A stretch of DNA of 64,000 nucleotides, taken from the NCBI GenBank assembly GCA_029953675.1, contig JAMWBK010000001.1, forward strand, positions 1,798,001 through 1,862,000, given 5' to 3'. This DNA comes from Rhodosorus marinus CCMP1338 (taxonomy: Eukaryota; Plantae; Rhodophyta). The notes under the pieces were generated by a model. It saw nothing but the letters and a program-made list of their open reading frames with translations, was not told the DNA's origin and ran no database searches. A program made the position numbers and the translations under genes. How positions within the stretch are numbered: position 1 is the first letter of the stretch; every line of letters starts with the position of its first letter. Of the stretch, positions 27,177-50,390 are shown one piece after another.

Positions 27177-28416
27177 TCATCTCGCTGACGATGCTATCAT
27201 CCTCAATGCTTTGACGCTTTCGAGGTCCATTGTATCTCCAATCAACAGCCGACGCTCCTTCATCGCCGCAGCTGAAAATGAACGAGATTTCGTGGCACCG
27301 TTCTTCAAGGTTTGAGGTGACGTCATCGTACTCAGCACACCACCATCGCTTGAAAGCTCGAGTCCATTTTGCTTCCGTGCACCAAATACAGCGCTCGAGT
27401 GGAATGCGCTTATGCAAGTTTTCGGGCACCGCCTGCGCAGATTCGACTCTACAGGTCGGTCTCTGGATGCCGCAATTTTTGCCCACGAGCTGTACCCCAA
27501 TGCCGATTCGAGCTCTCTCTCCATCTCACTCTCATCCAATCTACAATCTACAGAGGAAGTTGGGGGATTGAAGATGTTCTTACATTTGTCTTGGAGAGGT
27601 CGCCATTCCGGTTCGGATCCTTCTCCCATTGATACTGTCCGTCTTGGTCTTTGTAAGCAAATTTGTATTGGAAAGGTGTAGTAGACCTCTCAAACGATAC
27701 CTACAGAGACGAGCAATGAATTAGTTGTGATGCCCATCTTTCCGAGCAGAGGCTTGGATCCTTGAAGCGGGAATCTGTCGCTTGGCATGCAGAGGAGGCT
27801 CCTCGGAAAACGAATTCTTGCATCTGCTCTGCCCCACCTCTGTCTGCCAAACGTTATTCTTAACCTGATAAAGCGATTTGGATTTTGAGAGGTCCCACGA
27901 GCCCAGTTCTGGAGGAGATCCGACGAGATGGACTTGCGATGGTGATGCGTTGCGGACAAGCAGCTGAAAACTGGTGTGAATGGAAGTATCATCAACGACT
28001 GCCTCACGGTCGGTCACTTTCCGCAGATTGTCCTCACTAAGTTTGATGTTGTCACCTGACGGGAACCATTCCTCTTTCGCTTTCCCCGCCACTTTGACGG
28101 CGTATTTGTACTCAATATGCTTTGACGAGACCGGCAACAGCGGGGTGGACCACAAACCCTTAGAATCATCAACCTTTTCCATCGCGACGCCATGATCCAG
28201 TTCCCAAAATCCCAGGTCTTCGCTGCTCCCGACCAATGTCACCTTCTGCGTAACCCAAAATCGAAGCAATCGGAGAAAAAATCACAAAAAAGGGGTTTCA
28301 TCAGAATCGAAAAATACCAAGCCCTGTTTCAGTACGGAGGCACTCACTTCAATCCCATCCGTCTTGAAGTCCCTCACAAATCTAACTACAGGTGGTTCGC
28401 TGCTGCCACCCATCAT
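27177..28416 (-). CDS. Two tandem CBM20 starch-binding modules; either the N-terminal part of the laforin or a separate gene
   Basis: VTLVGSSEDLGFWELDHG...LWST...EYKY...WFPSGDN, and VHLVGSPPELGSWDLSK...VWQTE|VSF...FQYKFAY...YQWEKDPNR. ATG 28416. Linking exons at 27540-26870 are unresolved. Confidence 0.7.
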
Positions 28417-29645
28417 CCATTCAGACAAATTAAACTTCCACATCTCATTCCTTCCTCCCTACAAACCCTAGACTCCTCAAATTAACACAGAAATCCCCTC
28501 AACCAAAAAAAAACAGATGTCACTCTCCTTTCCATATCCCTTACTTCAAAATACCACCAAACCTGCTATCAAACCTCCCCCCAAAACCCCAATATGTCCA
28601 TACGGACCCACAACAGTCCACCAACCTCCCCCCGTCCCCCCACACCCCACACCCTACACGCTCTCCCCCCAGCTCACTCTCTCGATATAAACCCTTCCCC
28701 GAAAACCCAATTTTCCACTGAGATCTTCATTTTCCCATCAGAAACCCTTTAATAGATAACAACAATGACTTTCCCCCATTCTTCCCAACAAACCAGAAAA
28801 AAATAAATAAAAAAAGCTTGACATTTCATCCCCCCACCCCGCCCCCCTTTTCCCTCTCCTCTTTTCTAACACCTATCAAGAAATTCTATGAAAACAAACA
28901 AATCCCGAAAATTAATACCCACTCTATCCCCCCTCCGCAACCCAAAAAGTTAAGTTCACACCTCCAATTCGGGGAAAAGACGTCGCTTTTTTCCTCCATA
29001 ATATATTTATTCTAATTTACAATTGCTAAACTGCCCAATTTCCATTGCTCTGATGCTGTTAAATGTAAATAAGTTTTAGGTGTATTCGAAATAGTTTTTA
29101 TTTTTCTGGTTTCCCGATGTCAGTCAACGTTTTTTTTCCGTCCAATCACCGTCGCGATCTCGATCGTCCTCTCTTCTGGGAAATATGTAATAATAGTTAT
29201 TTGTGAGCATGTTTACCTTTTTTAGTAGACTTGATTGGTTTTAGTTCTACCAATCATGTCAGTCTAGAGGAAGAAGGAGCTTTCTTTTTGAACTTACGAT
29301 TTTCTTGTACGCTCACGACAGAAATCGTTTAAACGATACATCGAGATTTTTTCATCGAAAACTCATCCGAATTTTTAATCCCTCCATCGTCATAAATTTA
29401 CCCATTTTTTCTTCTCCGCTACTCCAAAAAGTTTTGATCATACTATCAAAATATGAATAATTGCGTAGACGAGAAGACAAAAAAAGGTCCGTCGACACGC
29501 CCAAAACAAAAAAAAATTTCCATTGCAGAACATCGTATTCATCAAAAAATCATGGCCGAGATTATACTAATTGGAGAAATAAAATGCAATCAAAAATTTT
29601 TTATCATATATGATTGGGTTAAATTTTACCCAATCAAGATTGGAA

Positions 29646-30597
29646 ATGGTGGCTTATGGTGATGTTGTTGAATGGAGACTTCGCAATAGTAGTGAGTTGA
29701 GGCGGTTGGTATGGGGGGCCCCCTCCATTCGATACCATTCGATGGTCGGATGTTCTTCATTGGGAGGCGAGCATCCACGTGGATAGACAGTGGGATTTTA
29801 CTGCTTTTTGTTTTTTTGAGGGAGTTGGTTGGTTGATTTGATTCACTGCTCTTGTCTGTGCGGCGTAGATAGAAAATCGTTTTTTGTATAGAAGAGCCTC
29901 GTTGGAATGGGCTGGCTTCCTTACCAAACTCGCACAAGTTCTTCGCGCAAGCTCTATGATTTCATGAATGTAGTAGCAGTTTGCGATGATGTCTAGATTA
30001 GATTATTTGTCGCGCCCGACAGGACGCTTTTCACCAAGGGTTTGAGGAAGCATTGTTTTGCATTGGAAGCAGTGCGATTAACCTCGCAGAGATAGGTTTT
30101 CATTTAGGTCTCCCGCCCGCCCCGCCCCCGGATGGATGGCATAGAAACGCTAAAGCCATGCGGTAGACCATGCTTGTTAGGAAGTTTGTTTCTGTTGTCA
30201 TTCTCGCTCGCTGGACAAGAAAAGTATGGTCAGCGCTGGTGATTCTCAGGATCTAGCGCAAGCCACTGGTTGTGCACGCGGCGCACAGGTTACGTTCAGC
30301 TTCAGCCAGGACATGACGACTAAGATTGTCTTGCTTCTGAGAAGATTTGCATGATTCTGTGTCCATGCCTCTGCCAGCCTCTGCCAGCCTCGTCCTGAGA
30401 GCTTGTCCTAGGTAGCCGGCGCTGGAGCAGATGGATTGAATCTCCCGGAGGAGCAAAATGTGCGGGCTTCCTCGAATACCAAAAAATGTTACCGATGAGG
30501 GATCTGGTGAATCCTGCTGACGACGTTGCCTACAAAGAGCACGTAGGCTGGTCCCAGCCGGTACCGGCTATGGAGCTTATGCCACAGTCGTCTTAAT
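29646..30597 (+). CDS. Possible small multi-exon orphan gene
   Basis: Coding-like composition with exon-like pieces (MVAYGDVVEWRLRNS; SRRWSRWIESPGGAKCAGFLEYQKMLPMRDLVNPADDVAYKEH). No consistent model built. Confidence 0.2.
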
Positions 30598-42448: not shown

Positions 42449-43168
42449 TTACGGACCCATCCTCATTCTGTTCCCTACCACTCGTGTGAGACCTGCGCGT
42501 TGAATGTTTAACGCGATCAAGTCGTGACCAAGGTTGTCATCGTCTCTCACCATGAACACTCTTCCCTCAGAGTTGAAATTCTGCACAGCCGTGTCTCCAA
42601 CCCCAGTTGGCATGCCGATGCAAAATTCCTCGTCTTCCGCATTCGGGAGGGTCCAAACGACCTCAGTGAGGTGACCGCCATCCGCATGATCTGAACTGTC
42701 CAAAGAGGGTGTCTCAAACTCCGTGGACTCGCAACTCGCAACCCGAACGTGTACATTAGTCTTCATCTCCACGTCATAGACCACAACCTCGTCCCCATCT
42801 GTCATCGACCCCCGGACAGGGAGGTATCGGAACATCATGCTATCGAATGTAGCGCCGTTGGCGCTCGACGGGTCTTGCTCGTAGGTCCCGATTAACAGAC
42901 CATTCCTTGGTCCTTTGTGAAGCACGTTCTGAAGTATCGGCTCCGTGAAGTACGCAACCTGTTCTCGTCCCACATACCGAGTCTTAGCCCTTGACGTGTG
43001 AGTGAAATGACCAGCTGATTCATAAACTGGAGTTTCCGACACTTCCACAGCAATTTCTACAACATCTCCCAGATTTACATCGTAGAGCCGAAACGTTTCC
43101 CTCCGGGCATCTACAAGTACAGCTCCCAAGAGCAACAACACCCCACTGACTATGGCTGTCTTCCTCAT
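42449..43168 (-). CDS. Single-exon secreted orphan protein, 239 aa
   Basis: ATG-started ORF with a typical signal peptide (MRKTAIVSGVLLLLGAVLVDA); acidic, beta-strand-like mature part; no family recognised. Confidence 0.75.
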   Translation of the reverse strand: MRKTAIVSGVLLLLGAVLVDARRETFRLYDVNLGDVVEIAVEVSETPVYESAGHFTHTSRAKTRYVGREQVAYFTEPILQNVLHKGPRNGLLIGTYEQDPSSANGATFDSMMFRYLPVRGSMTDGDEVVVYDVEMKTNVHVRVASCESTEFETPSLDSSDHADGGHLTEVVWTLPNAEDEEFCIGMPTGVGDTAVQNFNSEGRVFMVRDDDNLGHDLIALNIQRAGLTRVVGNRMRMGP

Positions 43169-44137: not shown

Positions 44138-47100
44138 CTAAACTTCGTCGTCCCTGGTTCTAGCCTCGTCTGGAGGCGCATCATTGACGTCGTCGAAGTT
44201 TATAGTTACGTCCTTATTTGCGCCAGGCTCGTCCTCGAAACCTCGCAGGCCAGGTAGATTCGTTAGGTCGACATTAACTCCCGCGTTCACGGCGGAAACT
44301 CCACCCGCAGCGTTCAGGGCTTCTTCATATGCAGAGCCAGCCACAACCTCGTCAATGGGTACGCTTCGACCAGTAGCACGTTTCGCAACCACCTTCGGGG
44401 GAGCCTTAATCTGGCCGTCCGCCGCAATACTCTTCATTTCCTCCATCTTCTTGTTCGCATCTCTGCCATTGATCCACCAAAGTCCAGCAGCGAGGATAAC
44501 AACGACAACGAACAGAATAAGACCCACGTACCACAGACTCAGATCTGGCCTCATTAGCGAAATCGCGACAAGCCCCACCGTAGTCATCAGCTTGATGAGA
44601 ATGTTCATAGAAGGCCCGCTAGTGTCCTTAAACGGATCGCCAACAGTATCACCAGCAACCGTAGCCTTATGCCACTCGGATCCTTTCGAGTTCTCCTCAC
44701 CAAAAAAGCCAGACTCAACCAACTTCTTCGCATTATCCCATGCTCCACCGGCGTTGGACATCAGAATTCCCATCATATATCCGCTGCCGATTGCAGCAAT
44801 CAGCAGCCCAACCAACGGCTGTTGACCAAACGCGAACCCAATAATCAGCGGAGAGAGAATTGCAATCATCCCTGGCGCAATCATTTCGCGGATGGATGAA
44901 GTTGTCGATATAGCAATACAGCGCCGGTGGTTAGGTCGAACTCCAGGCTTTCCCTCACGGAGACCGGGCATGGTATTGAACTGATGACGTACTTCAGCCA
45001 TGATCGCCCTTGCTGCCCTTGACACAGCGAGCATTGTCAAGGCACCGAACAAATACGGCAACATGATACCAATAAACACCGCTCCAACAACGTAAATGTC
45101 AGTCAACGATATTTGGATAGTATCGTCCAGGATCTTTGTGGGCAACTCATCCGCTGTACCCGTCAGTTCAATTGGGTCCGGAGCAAGCCCAGAATCCTGA
45201 ATCAGAGCGGTTAGGAGAGCATACGCAGTAAGCACTGCAGATCCATTCGAGAACCCTTTCCCAGTGGCAGCTGTGGTGTTTCCCAACGCATCGAGGGCAT
45301 CAGTAGTTTCTCTCACTTCCGGCGGCAACTCAGCCATTTCCGCAATGCCCCCAGCATTGTCTGCCACAGGCCCATAAGCGTCCGTTGCCATAGTAATGCC
45401 CAGCGTACTCAACATTCCCACTGCGCTTACAGCTATTCCGTACGCAGAGAACAAAGCAAATGTTCCTATGATAACAGCAAGCACCAGTAACATCGGCGCC
45501 ACCGTGGAAAGCATTCCAATCCCAAGTCCTTGGATAACAACAGCTCCAGGTCCATACTCGCCGCTTTGCGCGATGCTCTTCGTGGGCCAGTAGCCCCCGC
45601 TCGTCGAGAATTCAGTCAAGAACCCGATACTGACTCCAAGGAGAAGACCGAGAATCACGCACAAAAATAGCCTCCATGGCACCTCGACCGGAGCTGGATA
45701 CTCATAGAGGAGGGAATCCAAAGGTCTATAGTAATCAAAATCTATGAAAGAGCCATCTGGAATATTGTTCTCATTAGGGATGCACTGTGTATCCGGGTCG
45801 CTAGAAAGTACGAAGCGCGGGAGATCCGGTCTTCCAAATCCAAGGTTGTTCTGGAAGTCAGAACCAGCACCAAAGAAGCCCCAAGCAAGGCCAGCGGCCC
45901 CTCCCAGGACGAATACGGCTCCGACTGCAATGTTCAAATTAAGTGCAAGCAGGAGCTTCTCATTCCAGTGCTCACGCTTGACCTTGGACAGGTCGGGTAC
46001 GCGAACGTAGAAAGTACATATGCAAGCAGTCAAGACCCCGACGCATCCCATCATAAACGGAAAGGCAACGAACAATGACACCGATCCGAAGGTTCGAAGA
46101 AATGGATACGTCAGATAAAAGTCCTCATTGGTGCAGATAAAATATGCATACGAAGTGCCGTCCGGAAATCCAAGAGGGCCACAGGTTTCGTCAATGTAAA
46201 GGTGGTTGGCAACGCACAGCGCAAGGGAATTGCTGAAATAGTACGGCAGCGAGGCCCCAAGAATCGCCGTCGCTACAATGGAACCCACATATGATTCGAA
46301 CAAGTCAGCTCCCATCCCTGCGACGTCCCCGACGTTATCTCCAACGTTGTCTGCAATAGTCGCAGGATTTCGGGGGTCATCCTCTGGAATACCAGCCTCA
46401 ACTTTTCCAATGAGATCGGCACCCACATCAGCGGCTTTTGTATAAATGCCTCCACCGACACGAGCAAACAAGGCAACCGAGGACGCCCCAGCGGAGAAAC
46501 CGGCTAGTGCACGAACGTCCCGTAGCAGAAGATAAGAGGCCGAGAGACCTCCCAGTCCTGTGGAAACCACTGCTAGACCCATGACTGCCCCACTGCGAAA
46601 CGCAATGTTCAGGCCATCTTCAATTCCTATTGCTGACATTGCGGAAGTACGAACGTTTCCTCGAGTTGCGATGCTCATCCCTATGTAACCCGTGACACCC
46701 GACAGAATGGCCCCTATTAACAGGCACACAGCCAGTCGCCAGTTGATTCCAAAGCCGGTGAGCAACAACAGCGCGAGGATCAGTATTATCAGAAACGCGT
46801 ATTCACGACGAAGAAACTCCACAGAGCCCTCTCGGATATACGAAGCAATTTCAACCATTCTCGGGGTGCCGCAGTCCTGACGTATGACGTTGATCGCGTA
46901 CAAACACACCACCACATACCCAAGAGCTGCTGCTGTCATCGCCGCCCAGATATAAACAGACGGAACTAAGAACGCAGAAAATGGAACATGCACATTGGCT
47001 TAGCAAGTCGGGACAATGACAGCCTGGCACCTGGACCTTCGATGTGGTTGCACGCTTACTTATAAACGGAAATGTTTCGAACAAGTAGCCTGCATCCGGG

Positions 47101-47432
47101 TTCGTGCTCTGGTCAATGGTAGTGCAGATCCCTTCGATTTGACAGTTCGCGGCCAGACCCAACCAGACCAAAAAGAATAGGGTGATCAGAACCCAGAACA
47201 CTAGGAAGACAATTAAAATGATGCTGGTCGTGCCCGTGTCTCTCAGAGCTTTGAGGTCCACCTCGTACTCTCCCTCCTCTTCATCCTCATCGTACTTCAG
47301 ATCCCAGGCCGGCACAAAGCCCTTCTCCCCAATCGCATGATCGGCATCTGGCGGTTTTGGGACAAAGTCCGGGTCGACCTCCTCGTCATCGACACCCGGA
47401 GGTGGAGGTATAGGAGCTGGTGGGTCCTCCAT
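44138..47432 (-). CDS. Membrane-bound ion-pumping pyrophosphatase, K+-dependent signature, about 1066 aa, 2 exons
   Basis: GGGIYTKAADVGADL, EDDPRNPATIADNVGDNVGD, DAYGPVADNAGGIAEM, GGAWDNAKK, GDTVGDPFKDTSGP. A phase-1 intron at 46966-47059 joins an upstream exon starting at ATG 47432. Confidence 0.93.
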
Positions 47433-49031: not shown

Positions 49032-50390
49032 CTACTTCTTTGCAGCCTTCTGGGCCGACTTGGTTGCCTTGCCCTCGGTCTCCTTCTTCTCGACGGACTT
49101 GATGACACCGACGGCCACCGTTTGCCGCATGTCACGGACCGCAAATCGTCCCAATGGAGGGTAGGACGTAAAGCTCTCAACGCACATAGGCTTGGACGGA
49201 ATCATGTTCACCATGGCGGCGTCTCCGGACTTGATCATCTTCGGGGCCTCTTCAACAGTCTTTCCAGTTCGCCTGTCGATCTTGACAAGGAGCTCCTTGA
49301 ACTTGCACGCAATATGCGCGGTGTGGCAGTCAAGAACCGGCGCGTATCCCGCGTGGATTTCTCCGGGGTGGTTCAGAATGATAACCTGGGCCTTGAAGCT
49401 AGCGCATCCCGACGCGGGATCGCTCTTGCTGTCCGAGCACACGTAACCACGCTTCAGGTCCTTAACAGCAACATTCTTAACGTTGAACCCGACGTTGTCA
49501 CCAGGCACGGCCTGGGGAAGGGATTCGTGATGCATTTCTACGGACTTGACTTCAGTGGACAGGCCAGTAGGCGCGAAAGTCACCACCATACCGGGCTTGA
49601 TAACTCCAGTTTCCACACGTCCCACAGGCACGGTTCCGATACCTCCGATCTTGTACACGTCCTGAAGCGGAAGCCTCAGAGGCTTGTCCGACGGTCTCTT
49701 CGGGGGCTGGATCGCGTCCAGAGCCTCCAGCAGGCACATGCCCTTATACCAGGCTCCAAGCGGATGGTCTCCCTTCACCTTCTCGAAGAGGTTGTCACCT
49801 GTCCATCCAGAGGTAGGAATCTTGGGTACCTTGGCGGGGTTGTACCCGACCTTCTTAAGGTAAAGATCCATCTCCTTCGAGATTTCGTCGTATCTATCCT
49901 TAGACCAGTTCACAGATTTGTCGTCCATCTTGTTGCACGCAACGATCATCTGCTTCACACCAAGGGTGAAAGCAAGCAGGGCGTGCTCACGGGTCTGTCC
50001 GTTCTGGGAGATTCCAGCTTCGAACTCACCTGGTGGAGACGCAACAACAAGAATGGCAAGATCGGCCTGCGAGGTACCGGTAATCATGTTCTTGATGAAA
50101 TCACGATGTCCAGGGGCGTCGATGATGGTGAAGAAGTACTTGTCGGTCTCGAACTTCCACAACGCAATATCGATGGTGATACCACGCTCACGCTCGGCCT
50201 TCAATTTGTCCAGCACCCAGGCGTACTTGAAGGATCCCTTGCCCATTTCGGCGGCCTCCTTCTCGAACTTCTCGATGGCTCGCTTATCGATACCACCGCA
50301 CTTGTAGATTAAGTGTCCAGTAGTCGTCGACTTCCCAGCGTCGACATGTCCAATGACGACAATAGAAACGTGCTGCTTTTCCTTACCCAT
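49032..50390 (-). CDS. EF1A: Translation elongation factor 1-alpha, intronless, 452 aa
   Basis: [42 protein letters not shown]. Confidence 0.99.

Follow-up and report, generated by a model that had tools for sequence, protein, structure and literature searches.

A membrane pyrophosphatase of the red alga Rhodosorus marinus with the gate residues of sodium-translocating enzymes

The window analysed here is a stretch of 64,000 nucleotides from the red alga Rhodosorus marinus CCMP1338 (NCBI GenBank assembly GCA_029953675.1, contig JAMWBK010000001.1, positions 1,798,001 to 1,862,000 of the forward strand); positions below are those of the window. On its minus strand lies a gene for a membrane pyrophosphatase (mPPase) of 1066 amino acids. 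Judged from its sequence, this enzyme has the pattern of the K+-dependent mPPases and carries its gate Glu at the position used by the Thermotoga maritima enzyme, which places it in the E6.53 gate class. The evidence set out below tips toward an enzyme that transports Na+, with or without H+.

The gene and its gate residues

The mPPase region was found within a 951-codon open reading frame (ORF; 44138..46993, minus strand), and the full gene model was derived from the upstream DNA and from a homologue, P0001, of 1066 amino acids and 96% identity. After splicing, the gene yields a protein with 100% identity to an independent NCBI gene model, KAJ8908724.1 (P0269; 'hypothetical protein NDN08_005429 [Rhodosorus marinus]'), and the exon junction, which joins FPFI to IPSVYIW, is uninterrupted in an MMETSP transcript-derived homologue (P0270, 97% identical).

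Two motifs had been picked out in a sequence-only reading of this DNA, GMGADLFESYVGSIVATAILG in transmembrane helix 6 (TM6) and GNTTAATGKG at the K+ site, and both are present in the minus-strand translation (Table 1). The interval 45241-46310 that the reading gave holds GNTTAATGKG; the TM6 motif starts 8 nt beyond 46310. When the protein is aligned with HMMER to solved structures, the DLFES Glu of R. marinus falls onto the Glu in DLLESFVG of T. maritima, whereas TM6 of the Vigna radiata enzyme has DLFGSYAES, in which the Glu comes four residues further on; the positions given for both enzymes, including the plant motif DLFGSYAE, were thus correct. At 6.57, where plant AVP1-type enzymes have Glu, the R. 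marinus protein has Gly, and at 5.43 it has S286 rather than the Glu of Flavobacterium-type H+ pumps. Glu at 6.53 with none at 6.57 or 5.43 is a feature that Na+-translocating pyrophosphatases (Na+-PPases) require but that does not by itself make an enzyme one of them (PMC5150537, PMC6882861, PMC10897367).

At the K+ site, GNTTAA is common to the R. marinus, T. maritima and V. radiata enzymes. Among the representatives, those of the K+-independent kind have GNTTKA..TKG, with the Lys that had been expected of them. Neither the Lys at 12.46 nor the Thr at 12.49 that marks the AVP2-type, K+-independent enzymes is found in R. marinus, which has A690 and G693 at these positions, as K+-dependent enzymes do. 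With this pair and with Glu at 6.53 instead of 6.57, the protein bears out the claim of a Na+-type rather than a plant-type signature. Additionally, the Na+-site ligands D345, S349 and N912 are all present, as is K916.

The same residues recur widely. DLFES and GNTTAA occur in every retrieved red-algal orthologue with readable motifs (more than 40), and because they are kept in so many, the gate residues reflect neither chance nor sequencing error. Furthermore, no gate string is more frequent among K+-dependent E6.53 homologues than that of R. marinus, S-D-E-S-G / A-G / N-K, which 114 of 211 have.

Table 1. Features of the R. marinus mPPase gene and protein in window coordinates
Feature	Position	Strand	Residues and basis
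Whole mPPase gene (coding sequence, one intron)	44138..47432	-	1066 residues; spliced translation and PF03030 match
Exon 1: acidic, putatively cytosolic N-tail, extra helix TM0, two-Cys outer segment	47060..47432	-	spliced sequence
N-terminal additions together	47067-47432	-	
Acidic disordered N-tail	exon 1	-	residues 1-67
Extra helix TM0	47148..47231	-	residues 68-95; AlphaFold2 helix 71-95, predicted local distance difference test (pLDDT) ~96
Short outer segment after TM0, two conserved Cys	exon 1	-	
Intron, 94 nt, GT...AG, spliceosomal	46966..47059	-	splicing read; homologue continuous at junction
Exon 2: 16-helix catalytic core, TM17, C-tail, stop codon	44138..46965	-	ORF and splicing
S5.43	46481..46483	-	residue 286, helix 5
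TM6 gate motif	46256..46318	-	residues 341-361; translation, alignment to structures
D6.50, E6.53, S6.54, G6.57	TM6	-	residues 345, 348 (GAA, 46297..46295), 349 and 352
Outer loop 6-7 insert, red-algal-specific, three conserved Cys	46082..46243	-	~50 residues; alignment; AlphaFold2 helices 371-386 and 397-410, high pLDDT
Outer loop 8-9 insert, red-algal-specific, one conserved Cys, short strands	45674..45883	-	~65 residues; alignment, AlphaFold2
K+-dependence motif GNTTAATGKG	45254..45283	-	residues 686-695; A12.46 is residue 690 (GCT, 45271..45269), G12.49 is residue 693
Outer loop 12-13 insert, red-algal-specific	45095..45199	-	~25-35 residues; alignment
TM16 gate GPSMNILIK	44591..44617	-	N16.46 is residue 912, K16.50 is residue 916
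TM17 and C-tail together	44141-44536	-	
Extra C-terminal helix TM17	44465..44536	-	residues 935-958; hydropathy; AlphaFold2 helix 936-973
Putatively cytosolic C-tail, mostly disordered, APPK / AAGG / LPGL motifs	44141..44464	-	residues 959-1066 (~110); alignment, AlphaFold2

Catalytic integrity and predicted fold

The protein matches PF03030, the model of the membrane-bound pyrophosphatases (EC 7.1.3.x), over the whole core, with an E-value of 2.4e-231 and from position 3 to position 644 of the 645 in the profile. Among 196 canonical homologues, 77 alignment columns are at least 95% conserved, and R. marinus keeps the residue in all 77; these include 22 Asp, Glu and Lys positions, and every conserved acidic and basic residue of the hydrolytic centre and coupling funnel is among those kept. 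The enzyme is therefore predicted to be catalytically intact and, given its K+ site, K+-stimulated.

An AlphaFold2 model built from 68 homologues (mean pLDDT 86, predicted template modelling score 0.85) predicts a fold of 18 helices. It superimposes on TmPPase with a template modelling score (TM-score) of 0.88-0.89 and a root-mean-square deviation (rmsd) of 3.4-3.8 A, on PaPPase with a TM-score of 0.87 (rmsd 4.6 A) and on VrPPase with a TM-score of 0.82-0.85 (rmsd 5.5-6.3 A). Since all three solved classes match at TM-scores of 0.82-0.89, fold comparison was set aside as a discriminator of ion class.

Phylogenetic position and profile comparisons

For phylogeny, 211 sequences were aligned over 641 columns, comprising red-algal proteins, 148 cluster representatives (50% level) and segments of the T. 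maritima and V. radiata enzymes. Trees were built by neighbour-joining (NJ) with 100 bootstraps. The analysis was repeated with gamma distances and without divergent paralogues, and then with 21 bacterial loci added. Under both distance corrections and without the paralogues, the supported clades did not change and the backbone stayed weak.

The R. marinus protein belongs to a red-algal clade of 44 sequences with a bootstrap of 100. Diplonemids are the sister of this clade (48 sequences, bootstrap 73-80), the addition of one further sequence, P0045, gives a group of 49 (bootstrap 88-90), and beyond it lie a clade of 82 that is mostly eukaryotic or metatranscriptome-derived (bootstrap 60-66) and one of 113-134 that takes in Chloroflexota-type bacteria (bootstrap 52-60). 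A relative from the raphidophyte Chattonella falls within the same broad clade. E6.53 and A12.46 are found in nearly all canonical members of these groups, the exceptions being 3-4 representatives with altered motifs. The plant-type E6.57 clade that contains V. radiata (bootstrap 95-97) excludes the R. marinus protein, and the 27 K+-independent representatives lie outside every clade that contains it, up to a size of 166 sequences. Grouping with AVP1- or AVP2-type enzymes, which the sequence-only reading had named as the outcome that would speak against it, is thus not what the trees give. T. maritima is the sole characterised Na+ anchor placed in the tree, and R. marinus groups only with E6.53/A12.46 sequences.

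Profile comparisons made with the signature residues masked agree with this placement. The R. marinus protein scores 733-788 bits against hidden Markov models (HMMs) of bacterial E6.53 enzymes (9 sequences) and 637 bits against a plant-type model (8 sequences). Raw identity separates the groups less clearly, averaging 50% for E6.53 bacteria and 46% for the plant type. Among NCBIfam models, the protein fits a broad one, NF001960, best, and so do the Chloroflexota and Oscillospiraceae enzymes. Two sets of database models were set aside as evidence on the ion. All 12 sub-models of PRK00733 are named 'sodium-translocating pyrophosphatase' and are uninformative in this respect, and TIGR01104, labelled 'V-type H+', is passed by R. 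marinus (688 against a cut-off of 652) and equally by enzymes of Chloroflexota (876) and of Oscillospiraceae (865).

Bacterial relatives were also sought by a scan of genome contigs with query-specific peptides. The 22 loci that it gave came from uncultured genomes, among them those of Puniceicoccales and Planctomycetota, and no characterised species was represented. A search from a Puniceicoccales locus led to Melioribacter roseus and its relatives, one of which is named 'sodium/proton-translocating'. The M. roseus and Puniceicoccales proteins pass NF001954, whereas the R. marinus protein (710 against a cut-off of 894) and its eukaryotic relatives fail it. Because its score is below the cut-off, the R. 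marinus enzyme is placed, on this profile, outside the Melioribacter/Puniceicoccales subfamily.

The transported ion

Published comparisons assign A12.46, G12.49 and E6.53 to Na+-PPases and E6.57 to plant-type H+-PPases (PMC10897367, Table 1; PMC9408878), and the pair A12.46/G12.49 is the rule for K+ dependence (PMC5150537, PMC10897367). On these residues and on its phylogenetic position, the R. marinus enzyme somewhat more probably transports Na+, with or without H+, than not. In such a pump, cytosolic Mg2-PPi (PPi being pyrophosphate) would bind the conserved acidic funnel that loops 5-6, 11-12 and 15-16 form, and K+ would fill the place that A12.46 leaves free. D6.50, E6.53, S6.54 and N16.46 would hold Na+ at the gate after K16.50 swings away, and the Na+ would be expelled to the non-cytosolic side, that is, to the sea or the vacuole lumen. 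Some H+ may be carried along, as in bacterial Na+-PPases, especially at low Na+. A location in a membrane bordering one of these compartments and a role in salt homeostasis may be supposed. Red algae already use Na+-based membrane energetics, in the form of animal-type Na+/K+-ATPases (PMC7911474).

Several observations weigh against Na+ transport. The sequence-only reading took K+ dependence together with a DLxES Glu to define the Na+ group; this matches the published rule, but the same combination is shared by dual pumps and by a Carboxydothermus H+ pump, and the rule that a K+-dependent enzyme with E6.53 is a Na+ pump is not strict. Dual Na+,H+ pumps carry the same residues as Na+ pumps (PMC10897367, Table 1). 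K+-dependent H+-PPases with Glu at 5.43, 6.53 or 6.57 have been listed (PMC5150537; PMC6882861, Table 1), Carboxydothermus hydrogenoformans being the one named with E6.53 (PMC6882861, Table 1). Moreover, the authors of a 2024 structure of the P. aerophilum enzyme argue that selectivity depends on where helix 5 lies and on a contact between S5.43 and the Glu, not on the position of the Glu alone (PMC10897367). Characterised eukaryotic mPPases all pump H+ into acidic organelles (PMC7332688, PMC6882861). Within the present data, over conserved columns the protein is 52% identical to the V. radiata enzyme and, over a different column set, 46% identical to that of T. maritima; the deep nodes of the tree, including the position of T. 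maritima, have bootstraps of ~0%, in trees built by NJ only; and at 16.46 the protein shares the Asn of the plant H+ pump, where Thermotoga has Asp.

A rival reading is an enzyme that would pump H+ only, despite E6.53, and would acidify a vacuole or acidocalcisome as other eukaryotic mPPases do, with a helix-5 geometry that lets S5.43 hold a protonated E6.53. Such an enzyme is a serious rival, if a rather unlikely one. In its favour are the K+-dependent E6.53 H+ pumps already cited, the occurrence of E6.53 in K+-independent H+ pumps as well (PMC10897367), the presence of S5.43 and N16.46 in R. marinus, the identity to VrPPase, the uniform H+ transport of characterised eukaryotic enzymes, and the UniRef name 'H(+)-exporting diphosphatase'. 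That name, however, was assigned automatically. The choice between N16.46 and D16.46 was also rejected as a discriminator, since Asn is usual among bacterial E6.53 homologues. An H+-only pump sits poorly with the position of the protein outside both the plant-type clade and the K+-independent group, with nearest bacterial relatives that all have the Na+-type pattern, and with a masked HMM comparison that favours the bacterial E6.53 group by ~100-150 bits.

A dual pump of the Bacteroides and Clostridium leptum kind, which moves both ions at physiological Na+, is a special case within the reading of Na+ transport and is less probable than the H+-only pump. Its gate and K+-site residues are identical to those of R. 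marinus (PMC10897367, Table 1). Once the bacterial loci are added to the tree, sequences of the Puniceicoccales/Planctomycetota/Melioribacter type join the R. marinus clade, with a bootstrap of 52, and one of these sequences bears the NCBI name 'sodium/proton-translocating'. Melioribacter and Verrucomicrobia enzymes have reportedly been characterised as dual pumps. Against this kinship, however, stand the failure of R. marinus and its eukaryotic relatives to reach the NF001954 cut-off that M. roseus and Puniceicoccales pass, and a gate motif that reads DLFES in R. marinus and DLYES in the Melioribacter/Puniceicoccales group.

Origin of the gene and genomic setting

The notion of a bacterial contaminant, of a recent transfer unused by the alga, or of a pseudogene is negligibly likely: the closest non-eukaryotic relatives are bacterial and a red-algal cluster has been listed with a prokaryote sister (PMC3237598), but the gene has a GT-AG intron, eukaryotic nuclear genes on its flanks, the same GC content as the rest of the window, where GC is even, an intact frame with all conserved residues kept, and orthologues across red-algal classes and in transcriptomes. 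Contamination and pseudogene were accordingly rejected on the intron, the nuclear neighbours and the intact residues, and any transfer of the mPPase gene was ancient. The other large ORFs of the window are eukaryotic and encode a DEAD/SPRY helicase, Rpb2, an MCM protein, eEF1A, NOG1, Las1, a polyprenyl synthase and presenilin. Because a spliceosomal intron interrupts the mPPase gene and nuclear housekeeping genes surround it, the window is nuclear DNA of R. marinus, a marine unicellular red alga.

The eEF1A gene (452 amino acids) is an intronless ORF at 49032-50390 on the minus strand, ~2 kb upstream of the mPPase gene. On the opposite, plus strand, a 396-codon ORF at 49122-50312 occupies nearly all of the same DNA and is in all likelihood spurious. 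Just downstream of the mPPase gene, a minus-strand ORF of 239 amino acids at 42449-43168 begins with a hydrophobic N-terminus that resembles a signal peptide, and Pfam gives no match for it. The lowest GC content of the window (0.42) and its strongest negative GC skew (-0.25) coincide at 28001-30000.

Red-algal additions to the core

All solved mPPases have 16 helices, and the red-algal form is predicted to have two more, TM0 and TM17, together with the tails and loop inserts of Table 1; the AlphaFold2 model is highly confident in the inserts. The catalytic loops 5-6, 11-12 and 15-16 are on the cytosolic side, so all three inserts should lie on the side from which the ion leaves, and TM0 and TM17 would place both tails in the cytosol. 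Positive charges beside TM0 and TM17 are consistent with this topology. The conserved Cys residues of the outer segments may form disulfides. The APPK, AAGG and LPGL motifs of the C-tail are conserved in unicellular red algae, and the C-tail of Pyropia is short. In the alignment, the diplonemid and Chattonella relatives have TM0 or TM17 and lack the loop inserts. This predicted 18-helix architecture of red-algal mPPases was previously undescribed.

Relatives and degenerate paralogues

Among the matches listed, the closest named relatives are red-algal, from Rhodosorus, Bangiopsis, Porphyridium, Timspurckia and Pyropia (54-74% identical, 850-1220 amino acids). They are followed by the diplonemids Diplonema and Hemistasia, the raphidophyte Chattonella and metatranscriptome proteins, and then by bacteria, mainly Chloroflexota and gut Clostridia, at ~620 bits. 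The best 120 matches have DLFES or DLYES, plus GNTTAA wherever it is readable. The eukaryotes in this list are known as marine organisms.

A second R. marinus copy, P0017 (NDN08_003860), has 1036 amino acids and is 58% identical to the protein studied here (56% in the multiple alignment). Two Porphyridium proteins, P0005 and P0012, are orthologues or paralogues with 57-60% identity and the same architecture as the R. marinus enzyme. Red-algal genomes thus have at least two intact long-form copies of the E6.53 type, as seen in R. marinus (P0017) and in Porphyridium (P0005, P0012). The public names of these proteins conflict: the R. marinus gene is a 'hypothetical protein' at NCBI and, by automatic assignment, an 'H(+)-exporting diphosphatase' in UniRef. 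The Porphyridium orthologue is named a sodium pump at NCBI.

In addition, about 17 long-form representatives (1013-1119 amino acids), which align end to end with the R. marinus protein, extensions and inserts included, join the red-algal clade with a bootstrap of 99 (P0121, P0122, P0123, P0125, P0127, P0140, P0150, P0152, P0154, P0164, P0171, P0172, P0180, P0184, P0191, P0202 and P0217). Of the 77 conserved positions, they keep just 25-58, and the losses take in many of the catalytic Asp and Lys residues as well as the GNTT..KG motif. One of them, P0127, comes from the red alga Hildenbrandia rubra. From their residues, these proteins look like catalytically dead paralogues, or pseudo-enzymes, of the dimeric pump. 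mPPases function as dimers with half-of-the-sites reactivity; a dead paralogue could for that reason pair with an active subunit.

Put together, these features would describe a eukaryote-specific lineage of 18-helix, PPi-driven Na+ pumps in red algae and other marine protists, with regulatory or targeting tails, a disulfide-bonded cap formed by loops 6-7, 8-9 and 12-13 over the ion exit, and dead paralogues that perhaps pair with the active subunit. As a whole, this picture is speculative and more doubtful than Na+ transport itself.

Comparison with known systems and significance

One close characterised counterpart is the K+-dependent Na+-PPase of T. maritima (PDB 4AV3, 5LZQ), which shares the PF03030 fold, E6.53, D6.50, S6.54, K16.50, A12.46 and G12.49. 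The R. marinus enzyme differs from it in having N16.46 for D16.46, 1066 rather than 726 amino acids, TM0 and TM17, three outer-loop inserts and tails that are probably cytosolic, and in being eukaryotic and encoded with an intron. With the vacuolar H+-PPase of V. radiata (PDB 4A01) and the Arabidopsis AVP1 type, it shares K+ dependence (A12.46/G12.49), N16.46 and a eukaryotic host; unlike these, it has its gate Glu at 6.53 and Gly at 6.57, lies outside the plant-type clade and has a lower masked HMM score against the plant-type model. The Na+,H+-PPases of Bacteroides vulgatus and C. leptum, which match it residue for residue at the gate and K+ site (PMC10897367, Table 1), would form a neighbouring NJ clade if the Melioribacter/Puniceicoccales group represents them; R. 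marinus falls below the cut-off of that group. The putative Na+-PPases of prasinophytes and diatoms and the Porphyridium proteins belong to the same signature class.

The suggestion that a eukaryotic alga may have a PPi-driven Na+ pump stands in part. The host is an alga and the gate class fits, but the ion is only modestly favoured and the idea has already been published. In silico Na+-PPase orthologues were reported in marine prasinophytes and diatoms in 2020, with validation under way (PMC7438732); red algae are not discussed there. That report and the naming of the Porphyridium protein precede the present analysis, and the idea of a Na+-PPase in a eukaryotic alga is not new. Co-transport of Na+ and H+ by mPPases has been described as prokaryotic (PMC11593465), and the eukaryotic Na+-PPase candidates were awaiting validation (PMC7438732). 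In the literature searched, Na+ and Na+,H+ pumps of this family are described from bacteria and archaea only, and no biochemical validation of a eukaryotic Na+-PPase came to light (PMC11593465, PMC7438732).

Intact and with a single intron, the R. marinus gene offers a clean test case for whether such pumps exist in eukaryotes. Its lineage is also far from the three solved enzymes, which makes it useful for models of selectivity that set the position of the Glu against the geometry of helix 5. If the enzyme does pump Na+, it would be the first eukaryotic primary Na+ pump driven by pyrophosphate rather than by ATP. Marine eukaryotes would then have, beside their P-type ATPases, a second primary Na+ pump fuelled by a by-product of biosynthesis. 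This would bear on salt tolerance and on Na+-coupled nutrient uptake in seawater, as well as on the proposed use of Na+-PPases in engineering salt-tolerant crops (PMC7438732).

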